Origin: Octopus sinensis
Lineage: Eukaryota
Direction of reading: 5' to 3'
DNA: 64,000 nucleotides
Assembly (NCBI RefSeq): GCF_006345805.1
Contig: NW_021831852.1
Coordinates: 1-64,000 of the forward strand
Position numbers and translations under genes: made by a program. Below, in pieces: positions 1,792-62,939 of the stretch. The notes below the pieces were generated by a model that saw only the letters and a program-made list of their open reading frames with translations, searched no databases and was not told the DNA's origin. How positions within the stretch are numbered: the first letter of the stretch is position 1; every line of letters starts with the position of its first letter.

Positions 1792-1935
1792 ATGGATTTC
1801 AAACAACTGTCCAGGAATATTTCGCAGCGTTATTCCATTTCTTCTCTCATAGCTTTTGGGGTTCTTCTCGTTCTGACGATCGTGATTCTTCATCAAGATT
1901 CAAGAATAGGAAAAATGGAAGAGAAATCGAAAACG
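1792..1935 (+). CDS. Copy A exon 1 (48 aa; basic N-terminus plus hydrophobic [16 protein letters not shown] segment)
   Basis: The only copy with an intact 144-nt exon 1; canonical GTAAGT donor shared by all five copies. Confidence 0.8.
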
Positions 1936-2845: not shown

Positions 2846-2916
<71 letters not shown>

Positions 2917-2955
2917 TGAAATATATCTATATATATATCTATATCTATATATATA

Positions 2956-2986
<31 letters not shown>

Positions 2987-5367
2987 ACATACATATACAC
3001 ACACCCCAAGGAAACACAAAGAAGGGTGGAATTGTACTCCTGTCCGATCGCTCTTTCACCAGACATAATCCTGGAGAGGGAAATAAGTGCGTAATGAAAA
3101 AAATCTAATGGTGGTGTTCTAGCATGGCCATGCCCTGTCGCTGCAACGTTTAGCCCTATTAATATTAGTGTTAAGTATTATATCTAGATGTACACTTCCG
3201 CACACGCACAGAAACAAACATATACAAACACACACACACGCACACATAGGAATACGTACATATTTACACACATTTATCTATTTCTCTCCATCAGGAACGG
3301 AAGTGAGGCGAGTTTTTTTTAATCTTTTCTTTCCAACTGAAAATAAAACGTGCGAGTGCCAATGTAGATCGGTGAATTTCGTAATGTTTGACTGTAATTC
3401 ACGTTGGTTTTTATATATGACAATATGTAAGAACGAATGTAAATACATACACACAGACACACGGACAAACACACTCACAAATAAACACAAACACACACAC
3501 ATACGCACGCACACAGACACACGTGCTCAATTGTACACGAACAATCACACTATACAGTGTATGTCCACTCACATATATGTGTGCGTTTGTGTGTGTGTAT
3601 GCGTATAAGTAGATACGTCTATTTGTGATATTTATGGTGTGTATGCCCAAGTATACGTGTATAGCTATATATTGATATGTATTTATATATAAATATATAT
3701 ATATATATACATATATATGGGCGTAATGTGCGTACGTTTGCTTGTGTGCTTGTGTGCGCTTAAGTACGTGTATGTGCGTGTGTGTCTGTGCCCATATGTA
3801 TATAGTGTGTGCGTATCTGTATGAGTATTGTGGGCGTCTGTGCTGGTGTGTGTGTATGTACGTGTGTATGTGTGTGTATGTGTGTGTGCGTATGATACAT
3901 ATATCTCCGTGATCACCGTTACAGATATGTTGCTACATATCGCTGGTCACAATGCGCTTCGCATTGATTTAGCCTTCAAACGACGCCACCCCGCTGGCTA
4001 AGCGAGCAGGCCAACAGAAGAAAGGGAGAAATTTGTAGCGAAAGAGTACAGCAGAGATCACAACAACCCACTCCCTGAGCCTCGTGGAGCTTTAAACACA
4101 CACAACGCCCAGTCTGGGAATCGAAACCGCGATCCTACAAGCGTTGGTCCGCAGCCCTAACCACGGGGCCACTGCGCCTCCACGCAGACATTTATATAGC
4201 ACACAAACACCGCACGCACATAACACCCACACAACTCCTAAAACCCACACATACGCACGCATGTACAAATAGACATACACACCGATACATATACATACAC
4301 ACAATATATGCCTATACACACATACACATATACATACGTATACACATATAGATACAGACACACACCCACGCACGCAAAACATGCGCACGCATATGCACAC
4401 ACGCCCACGAATGCACACACCGAAAACTCACAATCCCACGGATACACGTATATACACCCATATACGCTTACACACACACATACAAACGCACATGTACACG
4501 CACACACAACTACACGCACATACGAGATAAACGCACATACACACACACACACACAAATGAACCCACACATACGTCCCATACACACGGCACACAATTATAC
4601 ATACACGCACACAATTATACATACATGTATACACACAGACGCAAAGTTATTCGCCACACACCCAAACTCTACACACACACACACATGTATCATCATTGCA
4701 CACATACACACATACAAACACACGCACACATACACTATGTAAAGCACAGTTATTCGCCACACACCCTAACTCTACGCCTACACACACGAACACACACACA
4801 TGCACACACACACGATACATATACATACACGCACACACACACATACTTGAAACTAGCGGTACCTACTATTTGACCTGTGGTAGAGACAAAAAGAGCCTTC
4901 TTCCTTGACCTTAACACTACTAGCCCAACAACATGCAAAGTTTAAAAGCCACAACCACACACACTTATACACACACATGCACACACAAACTTGCCATTAT
5001 TGTATACATACACACATACACACACACGAACACGCAGACCTCCGCGCACGCTCTTATCCACACTTACACACACATTCATCCTCCTCTACCTCCCTCCTGT
5101 CTTTGAAAGGACTTTTCTTCATCCATTTCCTTCCGGTCATTCAAAATGTGACCGCGGGTGTACTGTTGGCGATTTTTTCCACTCTGTCTTCTCTCCTCTG
5201 GATCTTTCCTTCTCGTATGTTTCCGACGAAGAGTCTCACCCGAAACGTTAAACCCTCCTTCTTTCCTTCTTTCCTGAGCGTCCAATAATACTATATTTGT
5301 TCCACGTCCTCGCATTGTTGTTTTTTGTGCTTTCTTGTTTGGATTAATTTATCTATATTTATACATG

Positions 5368-5428
<61 letters not shown>

Positions 5429-6024
5429 TATATATACATACATATACACACACCCCAAGGAAACACAAAGAAGGGTGGAATTGTACTCCTGTCCGATCGC
5501 TCTTTCACCAGACATAATCCTGGAGAGGGAAATAAGTGCGTAATGAAAAAAATCTAATGGTGGTGTTCTAGCATGGCCATGCCCTGTCGCTGCAACGTTT
5601 AGCCCTATTAATATTAGTGTTAAGTATTATATCTAGATGTACACTTCCGCACACGCACAGAAACAAACATATACAAACACACACACACGCACACATAGGA
5701 ATACGTACATATTTACACACATTTATCTATTTCTCTCCATCAGGAACGGAAGTGAGGCGAGTTTTTTTTAATCTTTTCTTTCCAACTGAAAATAAAACGT
5801 GCGAGTGCCAATGTAGATCGGTGAATTTCGTAATGTTTGACTGTAATTCACGTTGGTTTTTATATATGACAATATGTAAGAACGAATGTAAATACATACA
5901 CACAGACACACGGACAAACACACTCACAAATAAACACAAACACACACACACACACACGCACACACACACACACATGTATCATCATTGCACACATACACAC
6001 ATACACACACACATATATATATAT

Positions 6025-6059
<35 letters not shown>

Positions 6060-7840
6060 TTGTGTGTGTGTATGCGTATAAGTAGATACGTCTATTTGTG
6101 ATATTTATGGTGTGTATGCCCAAGTATACGTGTATAGCTATATATTGATATGTATTATATATAAATATATATATATATATACATATATATGGGCGTAATG
6201 TGCGTACGTTTGCTTGTGTGCTTGTGTGCGCTTAAGTACGTGTATGTGCGTGTGTGTCTGTGCCCATATGTATATAGTGTGTGCGTATCTGTATGAGTAT
6301 TGTGGGCGTCTGTGCTGGTGTGTGTGTATGTACGTGTGTATGTGTGTGTATGTGTGTGTGCGTATGATACATATATCTCCGTGATCACCGTTACAGATAT
6401 GTTGCTACATATCGCTGGTCACAATGCGCTTCGCATTGATTTAGCCTTCAAACGACGCCACCCCGCTGGCTAAGCGAGCAGGCCAACAGAAGAAAGGGAG
6501 AAATTTGTAGCGAAAGAGTACAGCAGAGATCACAACAACCCACTCCCTGAGCCTCGTGGAGCTTTAAACACACACAACGCCCAGTCTGGGAATCGAAACC
6601 GCGATCCTACAAGCGTTGGTCCGCAGCCCTAACCACGGGGCCACTGCGCCTCCACGCAGACATTTATATAGCACACAAACACCGCACGCACATAACACCC
6701 ACACAACTCCTAAAACCCACACATACGCACGCATGTACAAATAGACATACACACCGATACATATACATACACACAATATATGCCTATACACACATACACA
6801 TATACATACGTATACACATATAGATACAGACACACACCCACGCACGCAAAACATGCGCACGCATATGCACACACGCCCACGAATGCACACACCGAAAACT
6901 CACAATCCCACGGATACACGTATATACACCCATATACGCTTACACACACACATACAAACGCACATGTACACGCACACACAACTACACGCACATACGAGAT
7001 AAACGCACATACACACACACACACACACAAATGAACCCACACATACGTCCCATACACACGGCACACAATTATACATACACGCACACAATTATACATACAT
7101 GTATACACACAGACGCAAAGTTATTCGCCACACACCCAAACTCTACACACACACACACATGTATCATCATTGCACACATACACACATACAAACACACGCA
7201 CACATACACTATGTAAAGCACAGTTATTCGCCACACACCCTAACTCTACGCCTACACACACGAACACACACACATGCACACACACACGATACATATACAT
7301 ACACACACACACACATACTTGAAACTAGCGGTACCTACTATTTGACCTGTGGTAGAGACAAAAAGAGCCTTCTTCCTTGACCTTAACACTACTAGCCCAA
7401 CAACATGCAAAGTTTAAAAGCCACAACCACACACACTTATACACACACATGCACACACAAACTTGCCATTATTGTATACATACACACATACACACACACG
7501 AACACGCAGACCTCCGCGCACGCTCTTATCCACACTTACACACACATTCATCCTCCTCTACCTCCCTCCTGTCTTTGAAAGGACTTTTCTTCATCCATTT
7601 CCTTCCGGTCATTCAAAATGTGACCGCGGGTGTACTGTTGGCGATTTTTTCCACTCTGTCTTCTCTCCTCTGGATCTTTCCTTCTCGTATGTTTCCGACG
7701 AAGAGTCTCACCCGAAACGTTAAACCCTCCTTCTTTCCTTCTTTCCTGAGCGTCCAATAATACTATATTTGTTCCACGTCCTCGCATTGTTGTTTTTTGT
7801 GCTTTCTTGTTTGGATTAAATTTATCTATATTTATACATG

Positions 7841-7920
<80 letters not shown>

Positions 7921-10900
7921 AGAAATATGTGTGTGTGTGTGTTTGTGTGTGTGTACAAGCAGACATACCTGACATTGCTGGGGATTAAAATGGCAAAGTT
8001 GGTATATAATATATTCCAGTCATTTTGAAACAGGTGATATGGGAAAGTGCAACATTGACAACAAAACATTTGTAGAGTAAATGCTGGGCTAATTCGACTA
8101 AGCAACATGCTATGCGTCCGTTTGGAGTGTTTCAGGCCCTAACTTGTCATGCAAAATTCGAGGTGGGGTTTGTGTGATTTTTTAACGCACCGTAAAGCTG
8201 TCAGTGTGCGCTGTGTCTAACACGACCCATCATCGGAAATTTTGACACCTCACGTCGAGTTTGTAGTCCTACATCACTCATAGAGAAAATTTGGACGAAC
8301 TGTGGTTGTTCATTCGCGGGTACAAGGGAACCGATGAGGAGATAGACTTGCCATTGAACTTCGACGTCGGCGTAAATTCATGTTTATCTATCTTAGATTC
8401 ACCAAACGATGTCATTTGAAATGCATATTTGTATTGTCTGATATTGTTCAGAAAATCCTTCGACTGGAGTGAAGCGCCTTCTAGAAGATTCCTAAAGGGT
8501 TGAGATGGTAGTGTTGACAATGATTCCTGTCCGTATATGTTGTCATCTATTGCATTGTTTTAAGTTCTAAACGATAATAAATACCCTGAAGTTCTATTTA
8601 TATGATCCTATTTCTATTTTTTCACAGAACCGTTTCATCTCCAAGAAATCTCTCGACGATAACCTGATGACACACCAAGTAAGAACTAATTTTATAGCTA
8701 AAGTCTTTTACCCGTGTCTCCTTAACCAATGATTTATAATTTCACCAACTTTGAATTAGTTCCACATTACTATCCACATGTCCACAATAATATATACTAA
8801 GACACTTGCCTGAATTTATTTTAAAATATGTTCTACTTTACAATAATTTCCTAAATGAAATGTTATTCATTATACTATGGCATTTATTGTGTATATAAGA
8901 GTATATCTGCAGTGCTACGTCGAGAATTGTTTCTGCCCACACGGTGCCCCCGAGGGTGCTCTTCACCGAGTGTCCGAGGCGGCCGGTACGTTCACTGTGA
9001 AAAAACTGGAGTGCTCAGAGCGATCCCACCGGCTTGCATAAGAAAAGCATGGTGTGCCCTCTTCATCTGAGAATCAAATGCCCGAGCTGGCGCTTCACTG
9101 CGTTTATATCTACAATTCAGCATTCTGTCCACTCTTGTGCTTCTAATCATTCGTGAATAGAGACCCGTAATAATGATGTTCCACTTTCCTACACATTGCA
9201 TATTTGTCAATCCTACCTTGCGTTACACGGCAGCTAACCCATTCAATGCAGGTTGTTGGTGACCATCAGACAAATTAGGTAGCAGCATGTCGTCCACAAA
9301 TAACAGTCGACCGATCACGTAGAGATGAATTGGGATACCTCTACCACAATGGCTGCGCATATTCAACCAGATCACAAAAAAAGAATGTGAGAAGGGGCAC
9401 TAACAATGCACACTTCAACTAAGTGAAACCTTCACGTTGAAATTTTTCGACAGTTACATAAATACAATCATTTGATTATCCATATAATTATTTTATGGCG
9501 ACAAATTTTCGCCCAGTAAACTCACCTTCCTGGTAAACCATCCGCAACATGCTCCAGGGCACGTGATCGTGTGCCTTTTCATGGTTTACAGCGTATTCCT
9601 ACAGGAAATGCTTCACTGTTTGCTGGAAGATCTGTCTTTGAACGACTATCTGGTCGGATGTACTGCGTCCCGGACACGATAATTTCCCTACGTATCTTTT
9701 CCTGATATCTAGTGTAGACTTTTCTATAATTAGAACACACTTTTTGGTCTCCGTTTGAAAAAATTATGATTGTCTCCCCATATTTCCATTGCCTTGGTGT
9801 TTTTTTCCAGAGGTCCCATCCACCTAGCATGCATGGGTCACTCAGAGAATACCATCTGTATTTAAGTTTTCTAAACTATCAAGCCGACCCTGCTTTTCAC
9901 CAGCAGTTTTATCACTTTTAAGTGAATTGAGCTCAAATAAGCGTTCAACCGAAAAGAACCTGCCGAAAATATATACAATCACGAATCCATTTCGATGTCC
10001 AAGTTCATTCAGGAGAGTCACTCTAAATTTGGATGCAAAAGTCTCCACATTTTTTGTTTTGATCCCAGCATCCACTGCGGCTTCCAACTGTATTCTGTAG
10101 GTCGCACTAGACTTACCAATTTCCAGTGTTCGGCAGACTGTAGGGATTTTCAGGCTTTCAGACATTTAAGTAGTGACGAGTTGACAAATTCACCCCTCCT
10201 TTTACCCGAACGTTCAGCAAAGAGTGAAAGATGACCGAACTCTATCAGAAACCTCTGTCACCAAGTATTTCTATACCAGGCACCCTTATAAATATCCCTG
10301 TCTTAAAATAATATCTATACCATAGAGAGGAGAGTGTGTATCCGGCACAGAAGCCTGCTATGACCTCTCCACTAAGTTCACTGACGACATTCCTTCCAAT
10401 CTATCCTTTTCACGGTTATCAGTGCCAAGGTGTGGACTGAAGTCTCCTTGCAGGACAAATGACTTTACCCCAAATATATCTAAAGCTGAGGTGAATTTAC
10501 TTAGGGAGGATTTGTATTTGACCTCGCTGTTTGCTGCATATACTTACAGTACGATAAGGGCTCCAAGGAATAGCCGTACCCCGTCATCCATCGAGAGGGA
10601 TCAAAGCAGTTGCCTCCGGATCATGAGGGGACGTGCCCATTCGGGAAATATATTGCAGTCTCCACCAAACTTAATCTGTGATGCATTGGAAGGGAATACA
10701 AAATATGCGTGTTCCAGGACCCCGAAGCAGTTCCAGAAGGGATCAACAGTTCATAATTAAGAAATAAGATTGTCAAACCCGGACGGTACAAAACGCTGCC
10801 TGTTATATATAATCGGTGTCTCCTCAAGAAAGCTTCGTTACTTCGGAGGCGTACACTTGGAAGTAGGTTGGAAACTCCACCGTGCAGGTGTGGTGCCAAC

Positions 10901-12964
10901 TATGTCAGCACAGGCGGAAGTGGGATGCAGCTTTGGATATATTTGGGGTAAAGTCATTTGTCTTACAAGGAGACTTCCGTGCACACTTTGGCGCTGATAA
11001 CCGCAAGAAGTATAGATTGTGTGGAATGACGTCACACACCTTAATGGGGTGGCCATACTAGTCTTCTGGCAGGAAACGAACTCTCTTCGCCCAAACACCA
11101 AGCTGATATTTGTAATTGACCAATCAGGTGCCAAGAATTGATAATATAGCCAACATATCTATAAAAGGAGAACTTTATCATTTTTATGGTCACAAATATA
11201 TATATGTACTCACATCCAAGTTCAACTACAAAACAAACATCTGTTCTTAAGGAGACAAATAAACATTCTGATATTCTGAGATTAATCTCTCAATTCGTTG
11301 ACATCAACATCAACAACAGGCTCAATAGACAAATGACTAATTTTCTTCGTTTAAAATTTATTCTTAGCAAATCATTTACTTCTTTCATTCTGATTTTCAT
11401 TCATTCACTCATTCTTTTTCTCTTAAATTCTAAATTTCTCTCCCCTCTATCAATTCCTTCTAAGCCAACAACTTCCTTTGTATAGGATTCAAGAATTCTT
11501 TCTTTTATACTTAATTGTTTCATTTTAAATTTCACAGAACCTGGTCCCGGATCATTGTATACCCGGTGGGGCAGAACAACTTGTCCTCCTTATTCAAACC
11601 TTGTATATGACGGTTAGTATAAACTATACTTCTGTTCACTCTTTCTCTCTTTATCTTTCTCTTCTTCTCTTTTTATTCCTCTCATTTTCTCTTTCTGCCG
11701 CCCCCTCTCTTTCCGTTTCTCACACGGACACGCAAGCAAATCATGTGATATATCACGTTTTAAACGATACCTATAGACCCTATATAGACTGCGCAAGACT
11801 GCTTACTCCTTTGTATATATTTTGTAAAATCAGAATTTTAAATGTTGTCTACTACGGACCAGGTGAAAAGGATGTTGTCTAACTACAGAATATAGATATC
11901 TCTACGTTAAATTATAGATAGGGACTAGACTGGAATCCAGTTTAGCGATCAAGGACTCCTGGCTGACTTGTATGGAGTGTAGATATCAAATACCGAGGCA
12001 GCTAATTGGTGATCAAGTGTACTGGCTACGGATGGTGGTATTGTACGTGAGTGACCAGAGCTGAAAAGTGGCCACTTGACTATCATTAGCTAGAGTGTCT
12101 ATTGATTGTCGTTATAGACTACATTGAACAAGGCCTCTTAGAATTGATGAATGAATGTATATGGTTAATGAAATGAACGGAGAATGTACAATGTGGACTG
12201 GACAAACCACACACTGTAACTAATGGACAAAGCTAACTAAGGGCTGTATGTATTATGCAAAATATTGAGGGACCAAGTACCACTGTGTGAACCCAAGTTA
12301 GTACATATTGCACTTCTATTCTTCTCCGCCTTACCGAAATCGTCCTATCCCTCAAACCTTTCTGTTTTCATGCGCCACCTCCCCTCATTAATTGTCCAGT
12401 ATATCTTTGTAAAGTAACGCGGACACTTCCAATCCAAAGCTTCCCACATCTTCTCCAACCAACCTCGCATCCTTTGTGAATCTGCTCCCTATAAGCCCTA
12501 CACATATCCTTTATCGGTTGCCGACATCACTGTCCATTCATCTTAAGCACTACGCCATCAATGAGCTTCAAAATTTACCCCACTTCAGTTCATGCTTTGC
12601 ATGAAATAAAATCTGTGTGATCATAATATTATAGTATGTGGTAGTTCCGTCTCGTGGAAAGCCTGACTTGTCCGAGACAAACCGATGGATATAGCCAGCC
12701 ACGCCCGTATGGTCGGCTAAACAGTATTTCATCCCCTCTTACCCACCAGTTCTCTGCATCTCGCCGTCTCTCGTATTGTTCTACTCAAACCACATGCAAT
12801 TCCCATCACCAACAATTTTCCCGTTCAAACGTGAAAGACATCTTTTCCATTTCGGGAAATCACGACCACATGCGTTACAAAATCCCTTTCCTTTCTCCGT
12901 TTATTGACATCCACACACAAACATCTACTCCAAGCAAAACACATCACAACAACAAATACTTACC

Positions 12965-13008
<44 letters not shown>

Positions 13009-13746
13009 AAGACACGCAAACACACACACACACACACATGAAGAGAAGACAAACGCACGACTGCGATCTCATACTCACACAGCTTACACTTACATAAACA
13101 CTAACATAAACACTAACACCACAATTCGTTCACACGTGACTAAACATGACTCCTTTTAAGGGTCAAACTGTAATGAATGTTTCCGTTATTTCATATATAA
13201 TTTTGCTTAATATCTTTTTTACTTGATTTATTCTTACCAATTCTAGGTGTGGCTGGTGGACAATGGTACGACGACACAGGTGGCGGAAGTAATCTCTTAT
13301 GTCTACCTAACGACCCCATTTGGGCCAATTATACTACAAAAGTTGAAGAAGGTGGTCACATTTATGGCAGTGAATATCAACTACAGGATTACGACACCAA
13401 TACCATCTTTTCTTTTGCTAACGCTAAATCACTTCATGATCACAACGTTCCGTGCGCTGTCTGTTTGACACGACAACCTGCTGTTGTTATGACGTTACCA
13501 GCCAGAACACAGTGTTACCCTGGTTGGACAGCTGAGTATTCGGGATATTTGATGTCCAGTCTTCACGCAGAAAAAGGCAGACTAGAATATGTGTGTGTGG
13601 ACTATGCACCAGAAGCTGATCCAGCTGGTTACAGAAACGAAAATGGAGCTGTATTATATTTCGTTCAGGCTGCTTGTGGTTCATGGCCATGTCCACCGTA
13701 TGTCCATGGTCAAGAATTAACCTGTGTTGTATGCAGTAAATATTGA
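1792..13746 (+). CDS. Copy A: 4-exon gene (1792-1935, 8628-8678, 11538-11612, 13247-13746) for a membrane-anchored or secreted short-chain-collagen-C4/NC1-like protein; 1-nt deletion in exon 2 as assembled
   Basis: ATG at 1792 reads [48 protein letters not shown] to donor GTAAGT at 1936 (phase 0). Exon 2 is bounded by ttttcacAG/GTAAGA, exon 3 by ttcacAG/GTTAGT ([24 protein letters not shown]), and exon 4 runs from ttctAG to VAGGQ...[10 protein letters not shown]...VCSKY-stop. Phases 0/1/1 join in frame with the 52-nt exon 2 of copies B and C; A has 51 nt (gataacct vs gataaacct). Confidence 0.8.
2416..2615 (-). mobile_element. SINE 3' fragment (gactgcggccatgct...gccgaaccgct...ggggacgtaaac); homologues ~19741-19945, ~32812-33010, ~50470-50680
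   Basis: Resembles an abundant octopus SINE-type repeat recalled from memory (not searched); present once per unit in intron 1. Confidence 0.55.
2985..7905. repeat. Near-identical tandem duplication of ~2.45-2.47 kb inside intron 1 of copy A
   Basis: Identical ORF-track peptides offset by 2449-2472 nt (3168/5617, 3683/6155, 4905/7377); junctions lie in (TA)n tracts. Confidence 0.92.
3905..4181 (-). mobile_element. Same tRNA-derived SINE, inverted in copy A (duplicate at 6377-6653)
   Basis: Reverse complement of 20969-21245; the A box and B box read on the minus strand. Confidence 0.75.
7954..8560 (-). mobile_element. Helitron remnant (3' terminus plus RepHel N-terminal fragment); homologues start at 22621, 38313, 53400
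   Basis: Minus-strand translation gives [23 protein letters not shown] and [19 protein letters not shown] (Helitron RepHel N-region). Terminus in B-D is hairpin cccggc-att-gctggg next to CTAG|T on the minus strand (CTTG in A). Confidence 0.8.
8628..8678 (+). CDS. Copy A exon 2 (stalk; consensus [17 protein letters not shown])
   Basis: Polypyrimidine tract plus CAG acceptor and GTAAGA donor; homologous 52-nt exons at 23281-23332 and 39012-39063 supply the required phase 0 to phase 1 switch. Confidence 0.7.
8910..10545 (-). mobile_element. Decayed RTE-clade LINE (APE plus RT fragments) in intron 2; homologues ~23851-25660, ~39297-41170, ~54378-55500
   Basis: Minus-strand pieces read W..G..I.IF..GD.KVCSNYR (RT), LKSGKAAG...L..L.T.GIL (pre-RT), YFGSLFTND (late RT) and VYAAN...GDFSAHLG (APE, ORF 40800-41123); many stops and frameshifts. 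Confidence 0.8.
10770..11045 (+). mobile_element. Plus-strand RTE APE fragment unique to copy A
   Basis: ORF 10770-10997 IIGVSSRK...GWKLHRAGV...AQAEVG matches the APE start; it is the reverse complement of sequence at ~25540-25670 in B. Confidence 0.65.
11538..11612 (+). CDS. Copy A exon 3 (start of NC1-like domain, [10 protein letters not shown] motif)
   Basis: 75 nt, phase 1-1, AG/GT boundaries; the YxRWGRxxCP motif is typical of the start of this domain family. Confidence 0.85.
13247..13746 (+). CDS. Copy A exon 4 (main NC1-like domain, intact)
   Basis: ORF 13249-13746; motifs [72 protein letters not shown]. Confidence 0.92.
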
Positions 13747-15507: not shown

Positions 15508-15984
15508 TGTATGTATGTATGTATGCATGTATGCATGTATGTATGTATGTATGTATGTATGTATGTATGTATGTATGTATGCATGTATGTATGTATGTAT
15601 GTATGTATGTATGTATGTATGTATGCATGTATGCATGTATGTATGTATGTATGTATGTATGTATGTATGTATGTATGTATGCATGTATGTATGTATGCAT
15701 GTATGCATGTATGTATGTATGTATGTATGCATGTATGTATATATGTATGTATGCATGTATGCATGTATGTATGCAAGTATTTATGTATGTATGTATGTAT
15801 GTAAGTAAGTATGTATGTATGTATGCATGTATGTATGTATGTATGTATGTATGCATGTATGTATGCATGTATGCATGCATGAATGTATGCATGTATGTAT
15901 GTATGCATGTATGTATGTATGTATGCATGTATGTAAGTTTGTATGTATGTATGTATGTATGCATGTATGTATGTATGTATGTAT
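15508..15984. repeat. (TATG)n/(TATGCATG) microsatellite; similar tracts at 1-92, 647-900, 46858-47069, 47626-48052, 60435-61282, 61829-62265
   Basis: Direct reading of the sequence. Confidence 0.95.
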
Positions 15985-16539
15985 GTCAGGTCACTTTCGA
16001 GTGCTACTGGTAACATGTAACCCAGTACAACCTGTTGCATTGTCGGGTCGTCGGCGACTAAACCGGCAACGCAACCAAGCTTGCTTGGTGAAGAGGGTGT
16101 TTATTGGACATCCTGCCGGATGAAAAACAAAACCCGTCAAAGAGCGGAGGAATTCTTGAGAGTCAACGGCCATCCAATATATGTCTTAAGGCTGTATCAT
16201 GCGCGGGGACATAGAAATAATCGGACTGAATACCCGATCATGCGGTTAAACCACAGGGAGTGAAGGACTCCTAGCCTTTGTTAGGGCAACCTTCTAGGAG
16301 AGGGTAACTCAGGTAACTGGGATAACTCCGACATAAAACCTGCGGCTCAGTGGTTACCAATGATGTTGACTTATTCTTCTTTTCGGATTATGGCTGCTGT
16401 TGATTAGTGACTGGGATTGACTCAGTGCACATCCTTTCCTCGCTTTAAAAAAATCTTCATGCACAGGCATTGCACAATAACAACATTGATTAAGCACCGA
16501 GCAATGGTCATGCTCGATAATGAGGGGGCAGCCACCAAG
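15985..16539 (+). mobile_element. Second copy of the ~555-bp element (start of unit B)
   Basis: Colinear with 93-646 and flanked by (TATG)n on both sides. Confidence 0.45.
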
Positions 16540-18210
16540 TATGAATGTATGTATGTATGTATATATGGATGTGAGTATGTATGTATATATGTATGTATGT
16601 ATGTGTATATATGTCTATCGATATATAGATGCTTACATTCATATCTACATGCGTGCATACATGTGTGCATACATACATATAAGTATACATATATGCATGC
16701 ATGTATGTATGTATGTATGAAAGTATGTATGTATGTATGTGTGTGTGTATGTGTGTATGTTTGTATGTATGTATGTGTGTATGTATGTACATATGTGTGT
16801 ATGTATGTATGTGTATATGTATGTATGGGGGTATGTATGTATGTATGTATATATATGTAAGCATGTGTGTATGTATGTGTTTATGTAAGTATGTGTGTAT
16901 GTAAGAGTCTATGTATGTATATATGTATGTATGGGGGTATGTATGTATGTATGTAAGTATGTGTGTATGTATGTGTGTATGTATGTATGTATGTTTGTAT
17001 GTATGTGTGTATGTATGTGTGTATGTATGTATATATGTGTGTGTATGTATGTATATATGTATGGGGGTATGTATGTATGTATGTATGTATGTATGGGTGT
17101 ATGTATGTATGTATGTATATATGTATGTATGTATGTGAGTGTATATGACTGCATGTATGTATGTATGGGGGAATGTATGTATATATATATGTAAGTATGT
17201 GTGTATGTATGCATGTATGTATGTTTCTATGTATGTAGTTTGTATGTATGTATGTATGTATGTTTGTATGTATGTATGTATGTTTGTATTTATGTATGCT
17301 TGTATGTATGTATGTGTGTATATATGTGTGTGTGTATGTATTTATGGGGGTATATATGTATGTATGTGTGTGTATGTATGTATGTGTGTATATATGTGTG
17401 TATGTATGAGTGTATGTATATATGAATGTATGGGGGTATGTATGTATGTATATACGTATGTACGTACGTGAGTGTGTATGTATGCATGTATGTATGTATT
17501 GGGGTATGTATGTATGTATGTATATATGTGTGTGTGTGTATGTATTTATGGGGGTATATATATATGTATGTGTGTATGTAAGTATGTGTGTATATATGTG
17601 GTATGTATGAGTGTATGTATATATGAATGTATGGGGGTATGTATGTATGTATGTATATACGTATGTACGTACGTGAGTGTGTATGTATGCATGTATGTAT
17701 GTATTGGGGTATGTATGTATGTATGTATGTAAACATGTAAGTATCTGTGTATGTATGTGTGTATGGTTGTATGTATGTGTGCATGTATGTATGTATGTGT
17801 ATGTATGTATGTATGTATGTATGTGTGTGTGTGTATGTATGTATGTATGTTTGTATGTATGTATGTGTGTATGTATGTATGTATATATGTGTGTGTGTGT
17901 ATTTATGGGGGTATATATGTATGTATGTGTGTATGTAAGTATGTGTGTATATATGTGGTATGTATGAGTGTATGTATGTATATATGAATGTATGGGGGTA
18001 TGTATGTATGTATATAAGTATGTACGTACGTGAGTGTGTATGTATGCATGTATGTATGTATTGGGGTATGTATTTATGTAGGTATATATGTAAGTATCTG
18101 TGTATGTATGTGTGTATGTATGTGTGTATGTATGTATGTATGTGAGCATGTATGTATGTATGTATGTTTGTAAGTATACCTGTACGTATGTATGCATGTA
18201 TATATATATG
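16540..18210. repeat. Expanded (TATG)n-derived satellite with higher-order repeats
   Basis: Marker tacgtacgtgag at 17461, 17666 and 18023; marker tttatgggggtatatat at ~17341, ~17544 and ~17901. Confidence 0.85.
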
Positions 18211-19085
18211 TATGGGTGGGTGGGAATTGGTAGGTTTTGATTTTGATATTCCCATAAAACTTTTCTAATCCGATTAACGCTTGTTGTGAAGAATCCAATC
18301 CGAACAGCGGACTTCATTAGATTAAGTCTTGCGATTACTGTGTGGGTTGAACGAAATACTTCCCACTCTGGATATTAAAACAGTGTGTGAGTGTATGTAT
18401 GTGTGTGTGTGAGTGTGTGTGTGTTTGTCAGTGTGTGTGTGATGAGAGGGGGCTGTCAGTGTGTGTGTGTGTGTGTTAGTGTGTGTGTGTTCTTTTGTGT
18501 ATGTGTGTGCGTGAGTGTGTGTGTGTGTGTGTATGCCAATGTATGTGTGTTTGTCAGTGTGTGCGTCTATGTGTCAGTGTGTGTCTGTGTGTTTGTTAGT
18601 TTGTGTGTGTGTGTCAGTGTTTGTTGGTGTGTGTGTGTGTGTTTCAGTGTGTGTGTGTGTGTCTGTGTATTTGTCGGTTGAACGAAATACTTCCCACACT
18701 GAATATTAAACAGTTTCCCAATGATAACAAATAAAAATTAATTAACAACATTAGTAAATAAATATATCATAATATATCCAGAAACAGGAATCATTTCACT
18801 TTACACGTGTCTCTCATTCATCAAAATATTTTGCTAATTATTGTGTGACAATATCAAACCATCTCTTTCCAATAATTAAACCTGTCAGACAATTTCACAC
18901 CCGCTTTTACAGTTCCACCATCGCATTGGTTCATAAATTTACGATAAGATCTCTGCCAGAGCTGGGTTGTTGTGCGCTCAATAAATACGTGGAATTCAGT
19001 TACAGGTCTTCAGCTTAAACCTCGCATCTCGATCTTTTGTTGAAGCCACACGAAGTATCACGTACGACCGACAACTGTCACCAGA

Positions 19086-28743: not shown

Positions 28744-29448
28744 GAGAATGCAAATGCACAGCTATGATCTCAAGCATACACCAACACACAGCTTAAACTC
28801 ATATAAACACTAACATATACACCACAATTCGTTCACACGTGGCTAAACATGACTTCTTTTAAGGGTCAAATTGTAATGAATGTTTCCGTTATTTCATATA
28901 TAATTTTGCTTAACATCTTTTTTATTTGATTTATTCTTACCAATTCTAGGTGTGGTTGGTGGACAATTCTTTGACCACACAGGTGGCGGTAGTAATCTCT
29001 TGTGTTTACCTAACGATCCCATTTGGGCCAATTATACGACAGAAGTAGAAAAATGTGGTTACATTTATGGCAGTGAATATCAATTCGAATTATACCCAAC
29101 TAATAAACTCTTTTTTTTGCTAACGCTGAATCAATTTATGAACACAACGTTCCGTGCGCTGTCTGTTTGACACGACAACCTGCTGTTGTAATGATGTTAC
29201 CAGCTAGGACACGCTGTTACCCTGGTTGGACGATTGAATTTTCAGGATATTTGATGACCGCGCGTCATGATCATAAGGGCAGACTTGAATATGTGTGTGT
29301 GGACTACGCACCAGAAGCTGATCCAGCGGGTTACAGTAACGAAGACGGAGCTCTATTATATTTCGTTCAGGCTGCTTGTGGTTCATTGCCATGTCCACCG
29401 TATGTCAATGGTCGAGAATTAACCTGCGTTGTGTGCAGTAAATATTGA
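19086..29448 (+). CDS. Copy B of the same gene (19086-19228, 23281-23332, 26374-26448, 28950-29448); 1-nt deletions in exons 1 and 4 as assembled
   Basis: All splice sites intact. Exon 1 is 143 nt (C missing between T runs, atttttctct) and exon 4 is 499 nt (C missing in ttttctttt). The two ORF-track pieces 28952-29170 and 29167-29448 together give the full domain. Confidence 0.75.
20969..21245 (+). mobile_element. tRNA-derived SINE in intron 1 (copy B); homologues 34999-35230 (+) and 51838-52072 (+)
   Basis: A box TGGCCCAGTGG (20979-20989) and degenerate B box GGTTCCGATTCC, followed by a non-tRNA body. Confidence 0.75.
23567..23845 (+). mobile_element. 5'-truncated CR1/L2-type LINE 3' fragment, copy B only
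   Basis: RGHSEKL...[23 protein letters not shown].....FKASLD is the typical CR1 C-terminus; A-rich tail; putative ATATG target-site duplication; empty site in C (gagtatatatgcagtg). Confidence 0.8.
27769..28690. mobile_element. Foldback/MITE-like element with ~245-bp imperfect terminal inverted repeats in intron 3; homologues ~43268-44182 and ~57481-58400; absent from A
   Basis: 27769-28010 (aagcaac..gatatccagagataatgcagtacg...aacatgttgtctctacttcagcatag) is the reverse complement of ~28438-28690; sits between (TA)n tracts. Confidence 0.75.
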
Positions 29449-44235: not shown

Positions 44236-44923
44236 GAGAATGCAAATGCACATCTAGGATTTCATGCATACAGCAACACTGCTTACACTCACATAAGCAC
44301 TAACACATACACCACAATTCGTTCACACGCGACTAAACATGACTCCTTTTAAGGGTCAAATTGTAATGAATATTTCCGTTATTTTGCTTAATATCTTTTT
44401 TACTTGATATATTCTTACCAATTCTAGGTGTGGTTGGTGGACAACATCAAACCCATACTGGTGGCGGAAGCAATCTGTTGTGTTTACCTAACGATCCCAT
44501 TTGGGCCAATTATACTACAGAAGTTGAAAAAGGTGGTTACATTTATGGCAGTGAATATGAAATATCCCACAACTCGAATAAACTCTTTTCTTTTGCTAAC
44601 GCTAAATCACTTCATGATCACAACGTTCCGTGCGCGGTCTGTTTGACACTACAACCTGCTGTTGTTATGATGTTACCAGCCAGGACACAGTGTTACGCTG
44701 GTTGGACAGCTGAATATTCAGGATATTTGATGGCAGAACATTATGCTCATAAGGGCAGACATGAATATGTGTGTGTGGATTATGCACCAGAAGCTGATCC
44801 AGCTGGTTACAGAAACGAAAATGGAGCTCTATTTATTTCGTTCAGGCTGCTTGTGGTTCGTGGCCATGTCCACCGTATGTCAATGGCCAAGAATTAACCT
44901 GCGTTGTGTGCAGTAAATATTGA
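32151..44923 (+). CDS. Copy C of the same gene (32151-32292, 39012-39063, 41899-41973, 44428-44923); indels in exons 1 and 4 as assembled
   Basis: Splice sites intact. Exon 1 is 142 nt (two single-A deletions). Exon 4 has a 1-nt deletion near 44832, after which the +1-corrected frame resumes [29 protein letters not shown]-stop. Confidence 0.75.
33246..34168. mobile_element. Insertion bounded by ~227-bp direct repeats (33246-33472, 33942-34168), copy C only; class unresolved
   Basis: Two near-identical blocks flank ~470 bp of unique non-coding sequence; other units have only (TCTA)n/(TA)n at this site. Confidence 0.6.
35806..35840 (+). ncRNA. Minimal type I hammerhead-like motif of the Penelope-associated kind (variant core); degenerate homologues 5219-5253, ~7691-7725, ~22377-22411, ~53142-53176
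   Basis: GTTT-CCGACGA-A-GAGC-tcc-GCTC-GAA-ACGT-T-AATC (AAAC in the other copies): stem I, core, 4-bp stem II, palindromic ACGT stem III; the core has C in place of the conserved U4. Confidence 0.45.
35989..38268 (+). mobile_element. Young 5'-truncated RTE (BovB-like) LINE, copy C only
   Basis: ORFs 36006-36518, 36630-37805 and 37824-38195 share one RT frame (NYRGISLL, QCGFR, FIDLTKAFD, GVKQGCVLAP, LFADD, YLGS) and end in a C-terminal CxxC...SRIGLHSH. In-frame stops at 36516, 36597 and 37803; 14-bp flanking repeat aaatatatatatat (35975-35988, 38269-38282). Confidence 0.93.
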
Positions 44924-46523: not shown

Positions 46524-47069
46524 TAAATGTGGTCAAACTATATCTGAGGGGTCTAATATGCTTCATCAAAGAAAATTTTATCATAACTATGGAATTCCGT
46601 CGTACATATGCAGCCCATACGGAAGGTACACTTGCGAATTGAGTTTCAAATGGGAGACACTGTACCTGTATGTTTTGCTATGATTTATAAAACAAGAAGA
46701 AAAGTATTCAAAGCTAGTGATAATGACTAGCTAAAAATATGTATGAAAGTCATTATTCGGTTTTAATAGAATATTTCTGGCCAACAGAAAGGACACGGAT
46801 TCTAACTTAGTTCCAAGTATCATTCATTGGAATTTCAACAACATGAACAGGATATTTTTGTATGTATGTATGTATGTATGTATGTATGTATGTATGTATG
46901 TATGTATGTATGTATGTATGTATGTATGTTGTATGTATGTATGTATGTATGTATGTATGTATGTATGTATGTATGTATGTATGTATGTACGTATGTATGT
47001 ATTATGCATGTATGTATGCATGTATGTATGTATGTATGCATGTATGTATGTATGTAAGCATGTATGTAT

Positions 47070-48606
47070 GTCAGGTCACTTTCGTGTGCTACTGGTAACA
47101 TGTAACCCAGTACAACCTGTTGCATTGTCGGGTCGTCGGCGACCAAATCGGCAACCACACTAAGCTTGCTTGGTGAGGAGGGAGTTTATTGGACACCCTG
47201 CGGGATGAAAAACAAAACCCGTCAAAGAGCGGAGGAACTCTTGAGAATGAACGGCCATCCAATATATGTGTTAAGGCTGTATCATGCGCGGGGAAATAGA
47301 AATAATCGGACTGAATACCCGATCGCGCGGTTAAACCATTGGGAGTGAAGGACTCCTAGACTTTGTTAGGGCATCCTTCTAGGAGAAGGATACTCAGGTA
47401 ACTGGGATGACTCCGATATAAAACCTGCGGTTCAGTGGTTACCGATGATGTTAACTTGTTCTTCTTTTCGGATTATGGCTGCTGTTGCTTAGTGACTGGG
47501 ATTGACACAGTGCACAGCCTTTCCTCACTATAAAAAAAATCTTCATGCACAGGCATTGCAAGATAACAACATTGATGAAGCTTCGTGCAATGGCCCTACT
47601 CGATGACGAGGGAGCAGCCACCAAGTATGTATGCATGCATGTATATATGTAAGTATGAAAGTATGTATGTGTGTATGTATGTTGTATGTATGTATGTTGT
47701 ATGTATGTATGTATGTTGTATGTATGTATGTGTGTATGTATGTGTGTATGTATGTATATGTGTGTGTGTATGTATATATGTATGTAGTTAATTATGTGTG
47801 TATGTTTGTATATATGTATGTATGGGGGGTATGTATGTATATATGTATGTATGGGGGGTATGTATGTATATATGTATGTATGGGGGTATGTATGTATGTA
47901 TGTAGTATGTATGTATGTATGTATGCATATATGTATGTATGTAGTATGTATGTATGCATGTATGTATGTATGTATGTATGTATGTATGCATGTATGTATG
48001 TATGTATATATGTATGTACGTATATATGTATGTATGTATGCATGTATGTAGTTCAGGTCACTTTCGAGTGCTACTGGTAACATGTAACCCAGTACAACCT
48101 GTTGCATTGCCGGGTCGTCGGCGACTAAACCGGCAACCCCACCAAACTTGTTTGGTGAGGAGGGAGTTTCTTGGTCACCCTGCGGTATGAAAAACAAAAC
48201 CCGTCAAAGGGCGGTAGAACTCTTGAGAGTCAACGGCCATCCAATAAATGCCTTAAGGCTGTATCATGCGCGGGTACATAGAAATAATCGGACTGAATAC
48301 CCGATCGCGCGGTTAAACCATTGGGAGTGAAGGACTCCTAGACTTTGTTAGGGCATCCTTCTAGGAGAAGGTAACTCAGGTAACCGGGATAACTCCGATA
48401 TAAAACCTGCGGCTCAGTGGTTACCGATGATGTTGACTTGTTTTTTTTTTCGGATTATTGCTGGTGTTGCTTGTGAGTGGGATTGACTCAGTGCACAGCC
48501 TTTCCTCGCTTTAAAAAAAAACTTCATGCAGAGGCATAGCACGATAACAACATTGATTAAGCTTCGTGCAATGGCCCTACTCGATAACGAGGGGGCAGCC
48601 ACCAAG
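47070..48606 (+). mobile_element. Tandem pair of the ~555-bp element (47070-47625, 48053-48606) separated by (TATG)n
   Basis: Both copies are colinear with 93-646; period ~983 bp. Confidence 0.5.
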
Positions 48607-58420: not shown

Positions 58421-58467
<47 letters not shown>

Positions 58468-58746
58468 GAGAATGCAAATGCATATCTAGGATCTCATGCA
58501 TACAGCGACACTTCTTGCACTCACATAAACACTAACATATATACACCACAATTCCTTCACCCGTTGCTAAACATGACTTCTTTTAAGGTCAAACTGTAAT
58601 GAATGTTTCCGTAATTTCATATATAATTTTACTTAATATCTTCTTTTTTACTTGATTTATTCTTACCAATTCTAGGATGCCAGAAATATCATCAAAACAA
58701 GAAAAATCTAAATCTGTTCGAAATGATTCTAGAAAACATTTTGTAA
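49862..58746 (+). pseudogene. Copy D: exons 1-3 present (49862-50003, 54095-54147, 56232-56305), exon 4 deleted
   Basis: Exon-4 acceptor ttcttaccaattctAG (ends 58675) is followed directly by g-atgccagaaatatc, which in A lies ~170 nt past the stop; exons 1-3 are 142, 53 and 74 nt (all frameshifted). Confidence 0.85.
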
Positions 58747-61282
58747 GATTTCAGTTTATCAAACTTATCGTTGAAATAAAATGGATTTGTTTTTAACAGT
58801 ATTTTGTCTTCTGTCTCATGATTCAACAAACCCCAATAAAGTACCACCATAGAATTATATCAGCTTTCATGCACAGCCTTAGAAAATCTAATACTCGACG
58901 CTACTATCTCGACATCTTGGTTTTCAAATTACAAACACGGATTCTGACAAGGAGCATGACCGCTACATTACATAGCACAGAACTTAACTGATTCTTTCAA
59001 CAACACCAGATACTCCCACACAATCCATTCTATTTGCCGTTATTAATCAGGAAAAGCTTTCCGATCCATTCCTACCCCATATCTTATAAAACCTATTTAT
59101 CGTCAACTTTAGAAATATCAAAAATGTTCAAATTAAGCTTTCTGAGAAATGTGGAATTTACACGATCAATCCCTCAAAAGACAGTCGAAATAAGTATTGG
59201 TCCTGCCAACCTAAATCTATATCACAAAATGTCCCACCTCTCTTCAGATAAGATACAAAAATGAAACTCGATGCCCACAACATACACGTCATACACTAAC
59301 GCTGATTATACAAGAACAAGAAAGGAAATCAACCAGAAAAATTGCCTCATTTCGACAGCAGAGACATCAAATGCGACGATTTCTTTACTCATTACGTACA
59401 ACAACCAGAACCGAAGAAATGATGGATCCTAGAAGCTGTACATTTCATGCGAAACGAATACAACACACATAAAAGTGAGAGTAAAGAGAGCAAATATAGT
59501 CAGGGCAAGCACGGATGCTGTGTAAGAAGGCTGAGATGTTGTGACCGTCACGGTATATCCAATAGGATCATGAGAGTATGTTGGAGTGTGTCGAATATGT
59601 GTTAGATAAACGAAGGTTTCGGGTTAACAGCATCAAGCTGCAATAAAGATTAAAGATTATTAATGTTTACTATCCCAGTATATTAGTCTAATGGGTAAAT
59701 CTGCATTCGCTTCTCCAGATTACAAATATTTCTGCGTTGTAAATCGTAAACATTGCAGAGAATACGGACGCCGGTAGATCTTCAAATTCATCTTTTGATT
59801 CAGCGGCATAATTAGACAGTTTAAAACGACCGCCATATGTTTAAGCTGTACAGAGCATGCGCAGCTGCATATGCAACCCGCCATTACAATAGGAAAAATT
59901 ATGGGACTTGTTGAAATTAACCTTATTTCGAGGGCCAAACAGAGAGTGTTACACACACACACACACAGACACACACACAACAAACACACAAACACACACA
60001 CACAATACACACACCACACACAAATTACACACGCACGCACACACACACATACACACACACACACGCCACACACAACATACATACACATATATATACAAAT
60101 AGATTAAATTAGGTCAAACTATATCTGAGGGGTCTAATATGCTTCCTCTGAGAAATTTTAATCATAACAATGGAATTCCGTCGTACATATGCAGTACATA
60201 CGGGAGGTGCACTTGCGATTGAGTTTCAAATGGGAGACACTGTACCTGGATGTTTTGCTAGGATTTATAAACAAGAAGAAAAGTATTCAAAGCTAGTGAT
60301 AATTACGAGCTAAAAAATGTATGAATGTCATTATTCGGTTTTAATAGAATATTCTGGTCCACACGAAATAGAGACGGCTTCTAACTGAGTTCCGAGTATC
60401 TTCATTGGAATTTCAACAACAGGAACAGGATATTTTTGTATGTATGTCTGTATGTATGTATGTATGTATGTAGTATGCATGTATGTAGTATGTATGTATG
60501 TAGGGATGTAGTATGTATGTATGTATGTATGCAGGAATGTATGTATGTATGTATGTATGTGTTGTATGATGTATGTATGTATGTATGTATGATGTATGTA
60601 TGTATTGTATGATGTATGTATGTATGTATGTATGCATGAATGTCGGGTATGTATGTATGTATGTATGCATGTATGTAAGTAGGTATGCAGTATGTAGTAT
60701 GTATGCATGTAGGTATGTATGCATGTGATGTATTATATGCATGAATGTATGTATGTATGTATGTATGTAGTATGTATGTATGTATGAATGTATGTATGTA
60801 TGTATGTGTATGTATGTATGTATGTATGTATGTATGCATGTATGTATGTAAGTATGTATGTATGTATGCAGGGCTGTATGTATGTATATATGCATGAATG
60901 TATGTATGATGCATGTATGCATGTATGTATGTATGTATGTATGTATGCATGCATGTATGTATGTATGTATGTATGCATGTATGCGTGTATGTATGTATGT
61001 ATTATGTATGCATGCATGAATGTATGCTTGTATGTATGTATGCATGTATGTATGTATGCAGTATGCAGGTATGCATGTATGTATGCATGTATGCAGGTAG
61101 TATGCAGTATGTATGTATGTATGTATGTATGTATGTATGTATGTACGTGTGTATGTATGTAGTATGCATGTATGTATGTTTGTATTGTTAGGTATGTATG
61201 TATGTATGTATGTAGTATGCATGTATGTATGTATGTATGTATGTATGTATATATGTAGGTATGTATGCATGTATGTATGTAT

Positions 61283-61828
61283 GTCAGGTCACTTTCGAGT
61301 GCTACTGGTGACATGTAACCCAGTACAACCTGTTGCATTGTCGGGTCGTCGGCGACTAAGCCGGCACCCCACGAAGCTGCTGGTGATGAGCGAGTTTATT
61401 GGACACCCTGCGGGATGAAAAACAAAACCGTCAAAGGACGGAGGAACTCTTGAGAGTCAACGGCCATCCAATACCGTCTTAAGGCTGTATCATTCGCGGG
61501 GACATAGAAATAATCGGACTGAATATCCGATCGCGCGGTTAAACCATTGGGAGTGAAGGACTCCTAGACTTTGTTAGGGCATCCTTCTAGAAGGTAACTC
61601 AGGTAACCGGGATAACTCCGATATAAAACCTGCGGCTCAGTGGTTACCGATGATGTTGACTTGTTCTTCTTTTCGGATTATGGCTGCTGTTGCTTAGTGG
61701 CTGGGATTGACTCAGCGCACAGCCTTTCCTCGCTTTAAAAAAAATCTTCATGCACAGGCATTGCACGATAATAATATTGATTAAGCACCGAGCAATGGCC
61801 ATACTCGATAACGAGGGGGCAGCCACCA
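61283..61828 (+). mobile_element. Fifth copy of the ~555-bp element (start of unit E)
   Basis: Colinear with 93-646. Confidence 0.45.
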
Positions 61829-62939
61829 TATATGTATGTATGTATGGATGGATGGATGGATGTAAGTATATATGCATGTATGTATGGATGTATGTATATA
61901 TATATGTATGTGTATATGTGTCTATCGATATATACACGCTTACATTCAAACATACATGCATGTATACATGTATACATACATATATGTATAAATATATGCA
62001 TACATATATGTATGTATGTATGAAAGTATGTATGTATGTTTGTATGTATGTATGTGTGCATGTATGTGTGTATGTATGTATATATATGTATATATGTGTG
62101 TGTATGTAAGTATATATGTATGGGGGTATGTATGTATGTATATATGTATGTATATACCCGAGTGTGTATGTATGCATGTATGTATGTATGTGTGTATGTA
62201 TGTATGTGTGTGTTTATGTATGTATGTGTGTGTGTATGTATGTATGCATGTTTGTATGTATGTATGGGTGGGTGGGAATTGGTAGGTTTTGATTTTGATA
62301 TTCACATAAAACTTTTCTAATCCGATTAACGCTTGTTGTGAAGAATCCAATCCGAACAGCGGACTTCATTAGATTAAGTCTTGCGATTACTGTGTGGGTT
62401 GAACGAAATACTTCCCACGCTGAATATTAAAACAGTGTGTGAGTGTGTGTGTGTGTGTGAGTGTGAGTGTATGTGTGTGTGTGTGTGTGTGTGTTGTGTG
62501 TGTGTGTGTGTGTGAGTGTATGTGTGCGTGTGGGAGTGTGTGTGCGTGTGTGTGTCAGAGTATGTGTGTGTGTGGGAGTGTGTGTGTGTGTCAATGTGTG
62601 TGTGTGTGTCAATGTGTGTGTGTGTGTGTCCGTGTATGTGTGTGTGTCAGTGTGTGTGCGTGTGTGTGTCAGCGTGTGTGTGTGTGTGTGTCAGTGTGTG
62701 TGTCTGTGTCAGTGTCTGTGTGTCAATGTGTATGTGTGTGCGTGAGTGTGTGTGTGTGTGTGTGTGTGTAAGACAATGTATCTGTGTGTGTGTGTCAGTG
62801 TGTGTTGGTGTCTGTGGGTTTGTGTGTTGGTGTGTGTGTATGTCAGTGTGTGTGTGTTAGTGTGTGTGCGTGTGTGTGTCTGTGTGTCAGTGTGTGTGGG
62901 TGTGTGTGTGTTCGTGTTTGTGTCAGTGTGTGTATGTCA

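Follow-up and report, generated by a model that had tools for sequence, protein, structure and literature searches.

The window analysed here comprises 64,000 nucleotides of the Octopus sinensis genome (assembly GCF_006345805.1, contig NW_021831852.1, positions 1 to 64,000 of the forward strand), and positions given below without a locus name refer to it. Comparison of the window with itself revealed a tandem gene array with a unit of ~15.5 kb, and mapping of relatives onto the window showed that each unit is a four-exon gene of the O. sinensis "short-chain collagen C4-like" family, which carries a spongin / collagen IV NC1-like domain. Within the fourth exon, which encodes most of this domain, short patches differ strongly between the copies on an otherwise conserved scaffold. 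Exon 4 of copy A lies at 13247–13746 on the forward strand; it is preceded by an AG acceptor, starts in phase 1 with codons from 13249, and runs for 165 codons to a TGA stop codon at 13744–13746. Its product contains nine cysteines and an NYT sequon. The corresponding exons of copies B and C are located on the same strand at 28950–29448 and 44428–44923, respectively; the protein encoded by exon 4 of B is identical to O. sinensis XP_036366807.1 (P0009), and exon 4 of C is shorter by 3 nucleotides, in frame, in its second patch. The window corresponds approximately to ~3.97–4.03 Mb of chromosome CM016876.1 in a second assembly, GCA_006345805.1, with an identity of 99.1–99.6%.

Variable patches across the gene family

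Three hypervariable patches had been marked in copies A, B and C by a first-pass annotation made from the sequence alone. Their coordinates proved exact, and B and C carry the alternative peptides that had been read there, including the 3-nucleotide indel in patch 2 of C. In copy A, all on the forward strand, patch 1 is at 13264–13278 (WYDDT, codons 6–10, with WYDD at 13264–13275) in the loop after a long strand of the N-terminal half-domain. Patch 2, at 13378–13407 (codons 44–53), occupies a long connection in the same half, and its length differs from copy to copy by −2 to +1 codons. Patch 3, at 13555–13572 (SSLHAE, codons 103–108), is in the loop that follows the long strand of the C-terminal half-domain, a position equivalent to that of patch 1. 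In addition, the entropy profile of 21 copies contains a fourth, moderately variable segment that the annotation had not listed, patch 1b at 13336–13362 (TKVEEGGHI, codons 30–38), which holds the extra cysteine of B. This cysteine (EKCGY), correctly noted before, brings exon 4 of B to ten cysteines and is common to two other paralogues.

The differences among the three copies are concentrated in the patches far beyond chance. A and B differ at 29 of 63 positions in the patches versus 40 of 432 in the rest (Fisher p 1e-11), A and C at 33 of 60 versus 26 of 431 (p 3e-19), and B and C at 29 of 60 versus 32 of 431 (p 5e-14). The codons beside the patches (GGQ, GGG, YLM and KGR, at 13249–13263, 13279–13290, 13546–13554 and 13573–13584) are almost invariant even at four-fold degenerate positions. 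Per 100-nucleotide stretch, exon 4 of the three copies is 83–95% alike. The adjacent intron had been called near-identical, which is right for the last ~100 nucleotides of intron 3 (94–97% in all three copies) and wrong farther upstream, where B and C are 92–99% alike and A is only 44–89% identical to them. Downstream of exon 4, it is A and C that are 96–100% alike, and B is dissimilar. An (AC)n run is present at 12968–13037, just upstream of exon 4 of copy A.

The same pattern extends to 21 paralogues. At least 21 exon-4 copies are spread over ~3.95–6.55 Mb of one O. sinensis chromosome, and the set that we compared consists of 20 copies from GCA_006345805.1, taken from loci around annotated relatives, plus copy C from the window. 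The mean pairwise nucleotide distance is 0.43 in patch 1, 0.20 in patch 1b, 0.31 in patch 2 and 0.43 in patch 3, versus 0.073 in the rest, so that the four loop segments change 3–6 times faster than the scaffold. The 66 distinct domain sequences that we gathered come from Octopus and Argonauta species; the tandem family is octopod-specific.

One explanation would make this variation meaningless, namely that B and C are frameshifted pseudogenes or that the patches are errors of assembly or alignment. In the window, exon 4 of B and of C each carries a 1-nucleotide deletion, further such deletions occur in exons 1–2 of A, B and C, copy D has no exon 4, and one copy elsewhere in the family is a pseudogene. 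However, all five exon frameshifts that lie within the stretch covered by GCA_006345805.1 are missing from that assembly (A exon 2 at 8660; B exon 1 at 19134; B exon 4 at 29114; C exon 1 at 32171 and 32183), and the exons checked show zero substitutions between the two assemblies. Over 34 kb the assemblies differ by 76 substitutions and 123 indel events, among them 56 one-nucleotide deletions and 24 one-nucleotide insertions on the window side. The covered frameshifts being gone and the indels being mostly of one nucleotide, we attribute them to assembly noise and regard A and B as intact; we therefore rejected B and C as pseudogenes, the checked frameshifts of B and those of C exon 1 being missing from the second assembly. 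Exon 4 of C is outside the covered stretch, and its 1-nucleotide deletion (exon column 408) is probably the same noise. Its 3-nucleotide shorter patch 2 is real, as this allele class is common to three other copies. The patch sequences of A and B are identical in both assemblies, and patch alleles recur at other loci and in RefSeq proteins. Moreover, 20 of the 21 exon-4 copies are open and all length changes are in frame. Decay or artefact is thus largely refuted, and we consider it very improbable and essentially excluded. In the one pseudogene (L008:1251–1745), the reading frame is interrupted by a stop (I*ANY) and the first cysteine is replaced by Tyr.

Domain, fold and gene architecture

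In a search with the protein of exon 4, the best matches (E down to 3e-96) were proteins named "short-chain collagen C4-like" from O. sinensis, O. vulgaris and O. bimaculoides. Among the matches listed (120 relatives), phmmer E values range from 3e-96 to 1e-29, and these matches include amphioxus proteins and others with Pfam Collagen repeats; the more distant relatives belong to Argonauta, annelids, bivalves, amphioxus and other invertebrates. The C-terminal domain is homologous to that of named short-chain collagen C4 / spongin proteins. A Pfam search with exon 4 alone found no family at E ≤ 10, and 24 of 90 aligned relatives match Pfam, by the Collagen repeat only. A PDB sequence search with exon 4 returned nothing usable, and a sequence profile searched against PDB reached the Drosophila Viking NC1 at just E 0.33, over the CAVC...C.GW..GY motif.

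For the fold we used the AlphaFold model of P0009, which carries exon 4 of B. The predicted local distance difference score is 87–98 over the domain and dips to 71 at residues 141–150, which correspond to patch 2. When Foldseek was run with this model, the 29 best PDB matches were all collagen IV NC1 domains (E 6e-5, probability up to 0.99). The N- and C-terminal halves of the domain are homologous to each other (HHalign probability 92.5%, E 5e-7), and in their alignment patch 1 (WYDD) stands opposite patch 3 (LHAE). In the model, the strand at residues 86–95 is followed by the loop 96–107, which holds patch 1, the strand at 185–194 is followed by the loop 195–205, which holds patch 3, and patch 2 forms the long connection after the strand at 127–131 in the N-terminal half. 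Hence the domain consists of two homologous half-domains with patches 1 and 3 in equivalent loops, and all patches fall between predicted strands, in agreement with the earlier proposal that they lie in loops. Exon 3 provides the strand 72–76 and the start of the strand 86–95.

The spongin short-chain collagens have been described as variants of collagen IV whose NC1 domain is a recognition module; this domain has seven cysteines in common with collagen IV and three private ones, and has no HSQ motif and no domain-swapping region (PMC5395295). By count, the octopod domain likewise has ten cysteines, one in exon 3 and nine in exon 4, and it contains no HSQ motif. The ten cysteines counted earlier are accordingly correct for the whole domain and not for exon 4 of A, which has nine. 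The 29 best Foldseek matches, all to NC1, and the weak profile match agree with the literature on spongins as collagen IV variants (PMC5395295).

In the 21 copies, His, Tyr, Phe, Trp and acidic residues are frequent in patches 1 and 3. An H-Y-x-H-like motif is found in both half-domains of many copies, and the patch ends in a near-fixed His. This composition could hint at putative metal-binding or aromatic-stacking sites.

Upstream of the domain, the octopod proteins depart from their collagen-bearing relatives. Copy A begins with exon 1 at 1792–1935 (forward strand; tblastn of P0011 and sequence reading), which encodes the start codon, a short polar N-terminus and a hydrophobic segment of ~19 residues that we read as a signal-anchor; exon 1 is 97% identical among five copies. 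Exon 2 at 8628–8678 (forward strand) encodes the stalk, and in the window it lacks one A at 8660, a frameshift. With exon 3 at 11538–11612 (forward strand), which carries the first of the ten cysteines, the NC1-like domain begins. Members from Octopus and Argonauta start with ~14 polar residues followed by the ~19-residue hydrophobic segment (residues ~15–33), and none of them has a Gly-X-Y run of at least four triplets or a Pfam Collagen match. The short collagenous domain that spongins carry N-terminal to the NC1-like domain is therefore absent from octopods, whereas amphioxus and many other relatives have 9–23 Gly-X-Y triplets. In bivalve relatives (P0073, P0096), long and charged N-terminal regions, coiled-coil-like by eye, take the place of Gly-X-Y; these N-termini suggest that the collagen stalk was replaced more than once. 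A peptide of a relative is present in the O. vulgaris ink proteome (PMC10142993). In the library that we searched, the literature yielded just this peptide and no description of an octopus tandem array with hypervariable loops.

The remaining exons follow the same plan. Exons 1–3 of copy B begin at 19086, 23281 and 26374, and in copy C exon 1 ends at 32292 and exons 2 and 3 begin at 39012 and 41898, as placed by mapping relatives onto the window. A fourth unit, D, extends over ~47–62 kb. It has kept exons 1–3, and at 58463–59089 (forward strand) its intron 3 joins the 3' flank directly, exon 4 and ~170 nucleotides beyond it being deleted. The edges of the deletion are TAG microhomologies near 58676, and at the junction the end of intron 3 (...ATTCTAG|G) is followed by the sequence found ~170 nucleotides past the stop codon of unit A. 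Unit D is a dead copy, or else the assembly has collapsed here. A fifth unit starts at ~63404. Intron 1 of copy A contains a 2.5-kb tandem duplication (2891–5433 and 5347–7904, 97% identity). (TGTA)n / (GTAT)n microsatellites of 0.5–1.7 kb are situated between the gene units (15508–15986, 16539–18214, ~46850–48050 and ~60430–62270), and they account for the strong GC- and AT-skew blocks of the composition profile.

In the array, the RefSeq gene models are chimeras of very great length, 40, 86 and 117 kb (L001 10001–50234, L007 10001–96006 and the P0017 locus), in which odd upstream exons are linked to the last exon 4 of several units. Consequently, A, C, Z1, Z2 and five copies at L007 have no protein model of their own.

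Patch shuffling and tests for selection on the loops

The patch variants assort independently of each other and of their flanks. Patch 3 of copy A is nucleotide-identical to that of L007:67984–68478, a copy ~1.3 Mb away with 50 differences from A overall. One patch-3 allele, again at the nucleotide level, is common to four copies that have four different patch-1 alleles, and patches 1, 2 and 3 of A are closest to L3b, L2c and L7d, respectively. Over the three patches the distance matrices are uncorrelated (Mantel r −0.02 to 0.10), and the N- and C-terminal halves of the scaffold are weakly correlated (r 0.21). The flanks of exon 4 are also mosaic, as the most similar partner switches between upstream (B–C) and downstream (A–C), and other loci behave alike; we take a comparison of the best flank with exon identity, biased by the choice of the best partner, as a sign of mosaicism only. 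Shared alleles, independent assortment and mosaic flanks are expected of gene conversion or unequal crossing-over in an array, and the data fit a reshuffling of the patches by gene conversion or recombination. The patchwise conversion that had been proposed earlier fits these data, since the same or nearly the same patch alleles occur in dissimilar paralogues more than 1 Mb apart. A GENECONV-like run test on permuted polymorphic sites gave many "significant" runs in the conserved middle of the exon, which we discarded as an artefact of rate heterogeneity; the A–L2c and L7a–L7b tracts alone were kept, as suggestive. A Chi-like GCTGGTGG motif beside patch 1 was set aside as a coincidence.

Independent assortment bears on one possible role of the patches. 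In collagen IV, variable NC1 segments select the chains of the trimer, and by analogy the patches might lie where protomers meet and so govern which paralogues assemble into homo- or hetero-oligomers. The relation of the fold to collagen IV NC1 and the view of spongin NC1 as a recognition module (PMC5395295) would agree with such an assembly code, as would the many paralogues in one array and the symmetric positions of the loops in the half-domains, which suit repeated interfaces. However, interface residues usually co-vary between partners, whereas the patches assort independently, and the octopod proteins have no triple helix to be kept in register. We consider this role improbable.

We then turned to substitution rates. 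The changes in the patches, described before as dense and mostly non-synonymous, are so as a count (~74–80%) and not as an excess: non-synonymous sites make up ~82% of all sites, and under neutrality this share predicts such a count. For the A, B and C pairs, the Nei–Gojobori proportions of synonymous (pS) and non-synonymous (pN) differences are 0.60–0.67 and 0.44–0.55 in the patches, with pN/pS below 1, and 0.17–0.20 and 0.03–0.06 in the rest. As recombination is evident, we also made a tree-free count from the minimum spanning tree of distinct codons per column in 20 copies. In the rest of the exon, this gives 0.90–0.96 synonymous and 0.28–0.30 non-synonymous changes per site and a ratio of non-synonymous to synonymous rates (dN/dS) of 0.30–0.34; the scaffold, with dN/dS of ~0.3, is under purifying selection. 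In the three patches, it gives 1.7–2.9 synonymous and 1.5–1.8 non-synonymous changes per site, so that the local dN/dS is 0.51 when ties are resolved towards synonymous changes and 1.03 when they are resolved towards non-synonymous ones.

Two observations point beyond neutral drift. First, relative to the synonymous rate of the background, the non-synonymous rate in the patches is 1.56–1.98 (binomial p 0.003 to 4e-6), although recombination and the higher synonymous rate of the patches confound this ratio. Given such a ratio, a site model with constant dS would probably call the patch sites positively selected, whereas a model with site-specific synonymous rates would not. Second, octopod entropy is 1.8–2.0 bits in the patches versus 0.39 in the rest, a contrast of ~5-fold, while that of non-octopod relatives is 2.4–2.8 versus 1.5 bits, a contrast of ~1.7-fold across phyla. 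Within one genus, the octopod patches have accumulated about three quarters of the diversity seen across phyla. Recent divergence is likewise biased towards the patches: in 11 independent close pairs (1–10 residue differences), the 22 patch codons hold 16 of 61 differences versus 8.1 expected (p 0.005). P0126, the protein closest to A from O. bimaculoides, has kept the A-type features, and 9 of its 20 differences are at patch positions.

From these data we give about even chances to a putative function in which the loops make recognition differ from paralogue to paralogue and in which loop diversity is maintained. A signal-anchor and a short stalk would present a ten-cysteine spongin-type head, whose loops would fix the binding partner of each paralogue. 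In that case the array would supply a range of recognition specificities, with duplication, loop substitution and patch shuffling as their source, and it would stay diverse because homogenised loops would be at a disadvantage.

Several results weigh against this recognition role. The local dN/dS of the patches does not exceed 1, so the diversifying selection proposed in the first-pass annotation is not sustained, and positive selection on the patches is not shown by the local dN/dS criterion. The synonymous rate itself is 1.9–3.1 times that of the rest (p 0.006 to 1.5e-7), and pairs with the same amino acid use different codons at a frequency of 0.235 in the patches, ~0.11 outside and 0.06 in the 1–3 flanking codons. 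Deep divergence or a local mutational process would explain such a raised synonymous diversity no less well than selection, and its fall from 0.235 to 0.06 means that the boundaries are sharp, with no hitch-hiking gradient. Column entropies of octopods and non-octopods are correlated (Spearman rho 0.60), and 57% of the patch columns are in the top quartile of non-octopod entropy. The patches are thus naturally variable loops of the fold, the same columns being already more variable in relatives, and may be merely its least constrained part. From hydropathy alone, we infer a putative type II topology, in which the protein would be displayed on the cell surface (or shed) and a short stalk would carry a glycosylated extracellular head rich in disulfides. 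Finally, the Pfam C4 profile (PF01413) matches none of the 90 aligned relatives at E ≤ 1, and the Foldseek NC1 matches have a TM-score of only ~0.2 and a root-mean-square deviation of ~18 Å.

These points can be assembled into a neutral account, in which the least constrained loops drift at a near-neutral rate while the rest of the exon is kept similar by purifying selection and by gene conversion across the array. Diverged loops would block or end conversion tracts and so retain old differences, giving diversity that has no adaptive role. The local dN/dS of 0.5–1.0, the synonymous diversity that is highest in the patches and lowest in the codons adjoining them, the variability of the same columns across phyla and the conversion or recombination evident in the array all agree with it. 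On the other side, the non-synonymous rate in the patches is 1.6–2.0 times the background synonymous rate, and patch alleles move between copies, so conversion is not blocked there. The composition of the patches is non-random (His, Tyr and acidic residues, with the near-fixed His ending patches 1 and 3), and 20 of 21 copies have neither stops nor frameshifts and change length in frame. This neutral alternative remains serious, and we hold it to be possible and on the doubtful side. In summary, the first observation, that of hypervariable patches on a conserved scaffold, is confirmed, and its first interpretation is partly supported.

A putative recognition repertoire

The family can be compared with several known systems. 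The closest are the spongin short-chain collagens of sponges, cnidarians, lophotrochozoans and cephalochordates, whose C-terminal domain is homologous (E 1e-41 to collagen-repeat members of amphioxus). Unlike them, the octopod members have no Gly-X-Y domain, begin with a signal-anchor-like hydrophobic segment and form a large tandem array with hypervariable loops. Collagen IV NC1 (PF01413) accounts for all 29 best structural matches of the octopod domain, and the two have in common a two-fold internal repeat and the CAVC...C.GW..YSGY motif. The octopod domain differs in its 10 cysteines instead of 12, in having no match to the C4 profile, a TM-score of ~0.2 and no triple helix, and in showing no sign of hexamer formation or of the sulfilimine cross-link residues.

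Recognition families of other invertebrates offer a second comparison. Bivalve C1q-domain proteins and snail fibrinogen-related proteins are lineage-specific expansions of collagen-type heads for recognition. Like the octopod family, they have a globular C-terminal head with a lost or shortened collagen stalk, dozens of tandem paralogues and loop variation on a conserved beta scaffold; the octopod fold is, however, NC1-like and not of the C1q/TNF or fibrinogen type, and the octopod proteins are putatively membrane-anchored rather than secreted. Conotoxin-type families, in which conserved flanks enclose a hypervariable core with raised synonymous and non-synonymous rates, resemble the octopod genes in the sharp boundaries between invariant and hypervariable parts and in the raising of both substitution classes in the variable segments. 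They differ in that the octopod variable segments are loops of 4–11 codons within a domain of 190 residues and not a whole mature peptide, and nothing about the octopod family suggests a role in venom.

The established view of the spongin / NC1 domain is that of a module for matrix assembly, and we know of no diversified recognition-receptor family described in cephalopods. Tentatively, and as an idea that we rate as unlikely, octopods may have made a family of membrane-anchored receptors without collagen from the ancient NC1 head of collagen IV / spongin, with four loops diversified combinatorially through patch shuffling in the tandem array, a putative germline recognition repertoire for immune, self/non-self or contact-chemosensory use. 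In practical terms, the RefSeq models collapse the array into giant chimeric genes and leave most copies without a protein model. The array provides a concrete candidate set for octopus immunity, tissue recognition and contact sensing. If the recognition role is true, a very old metazoan domain would have been put to a new use here, as an NC1-like head that is anchored in the membrane, has no collagen and exists in dozens of tandem copies with shuffled hypervariable loops, and the NC1-like fold would serve in a recognition repertoire, a role in which it is not previously known.

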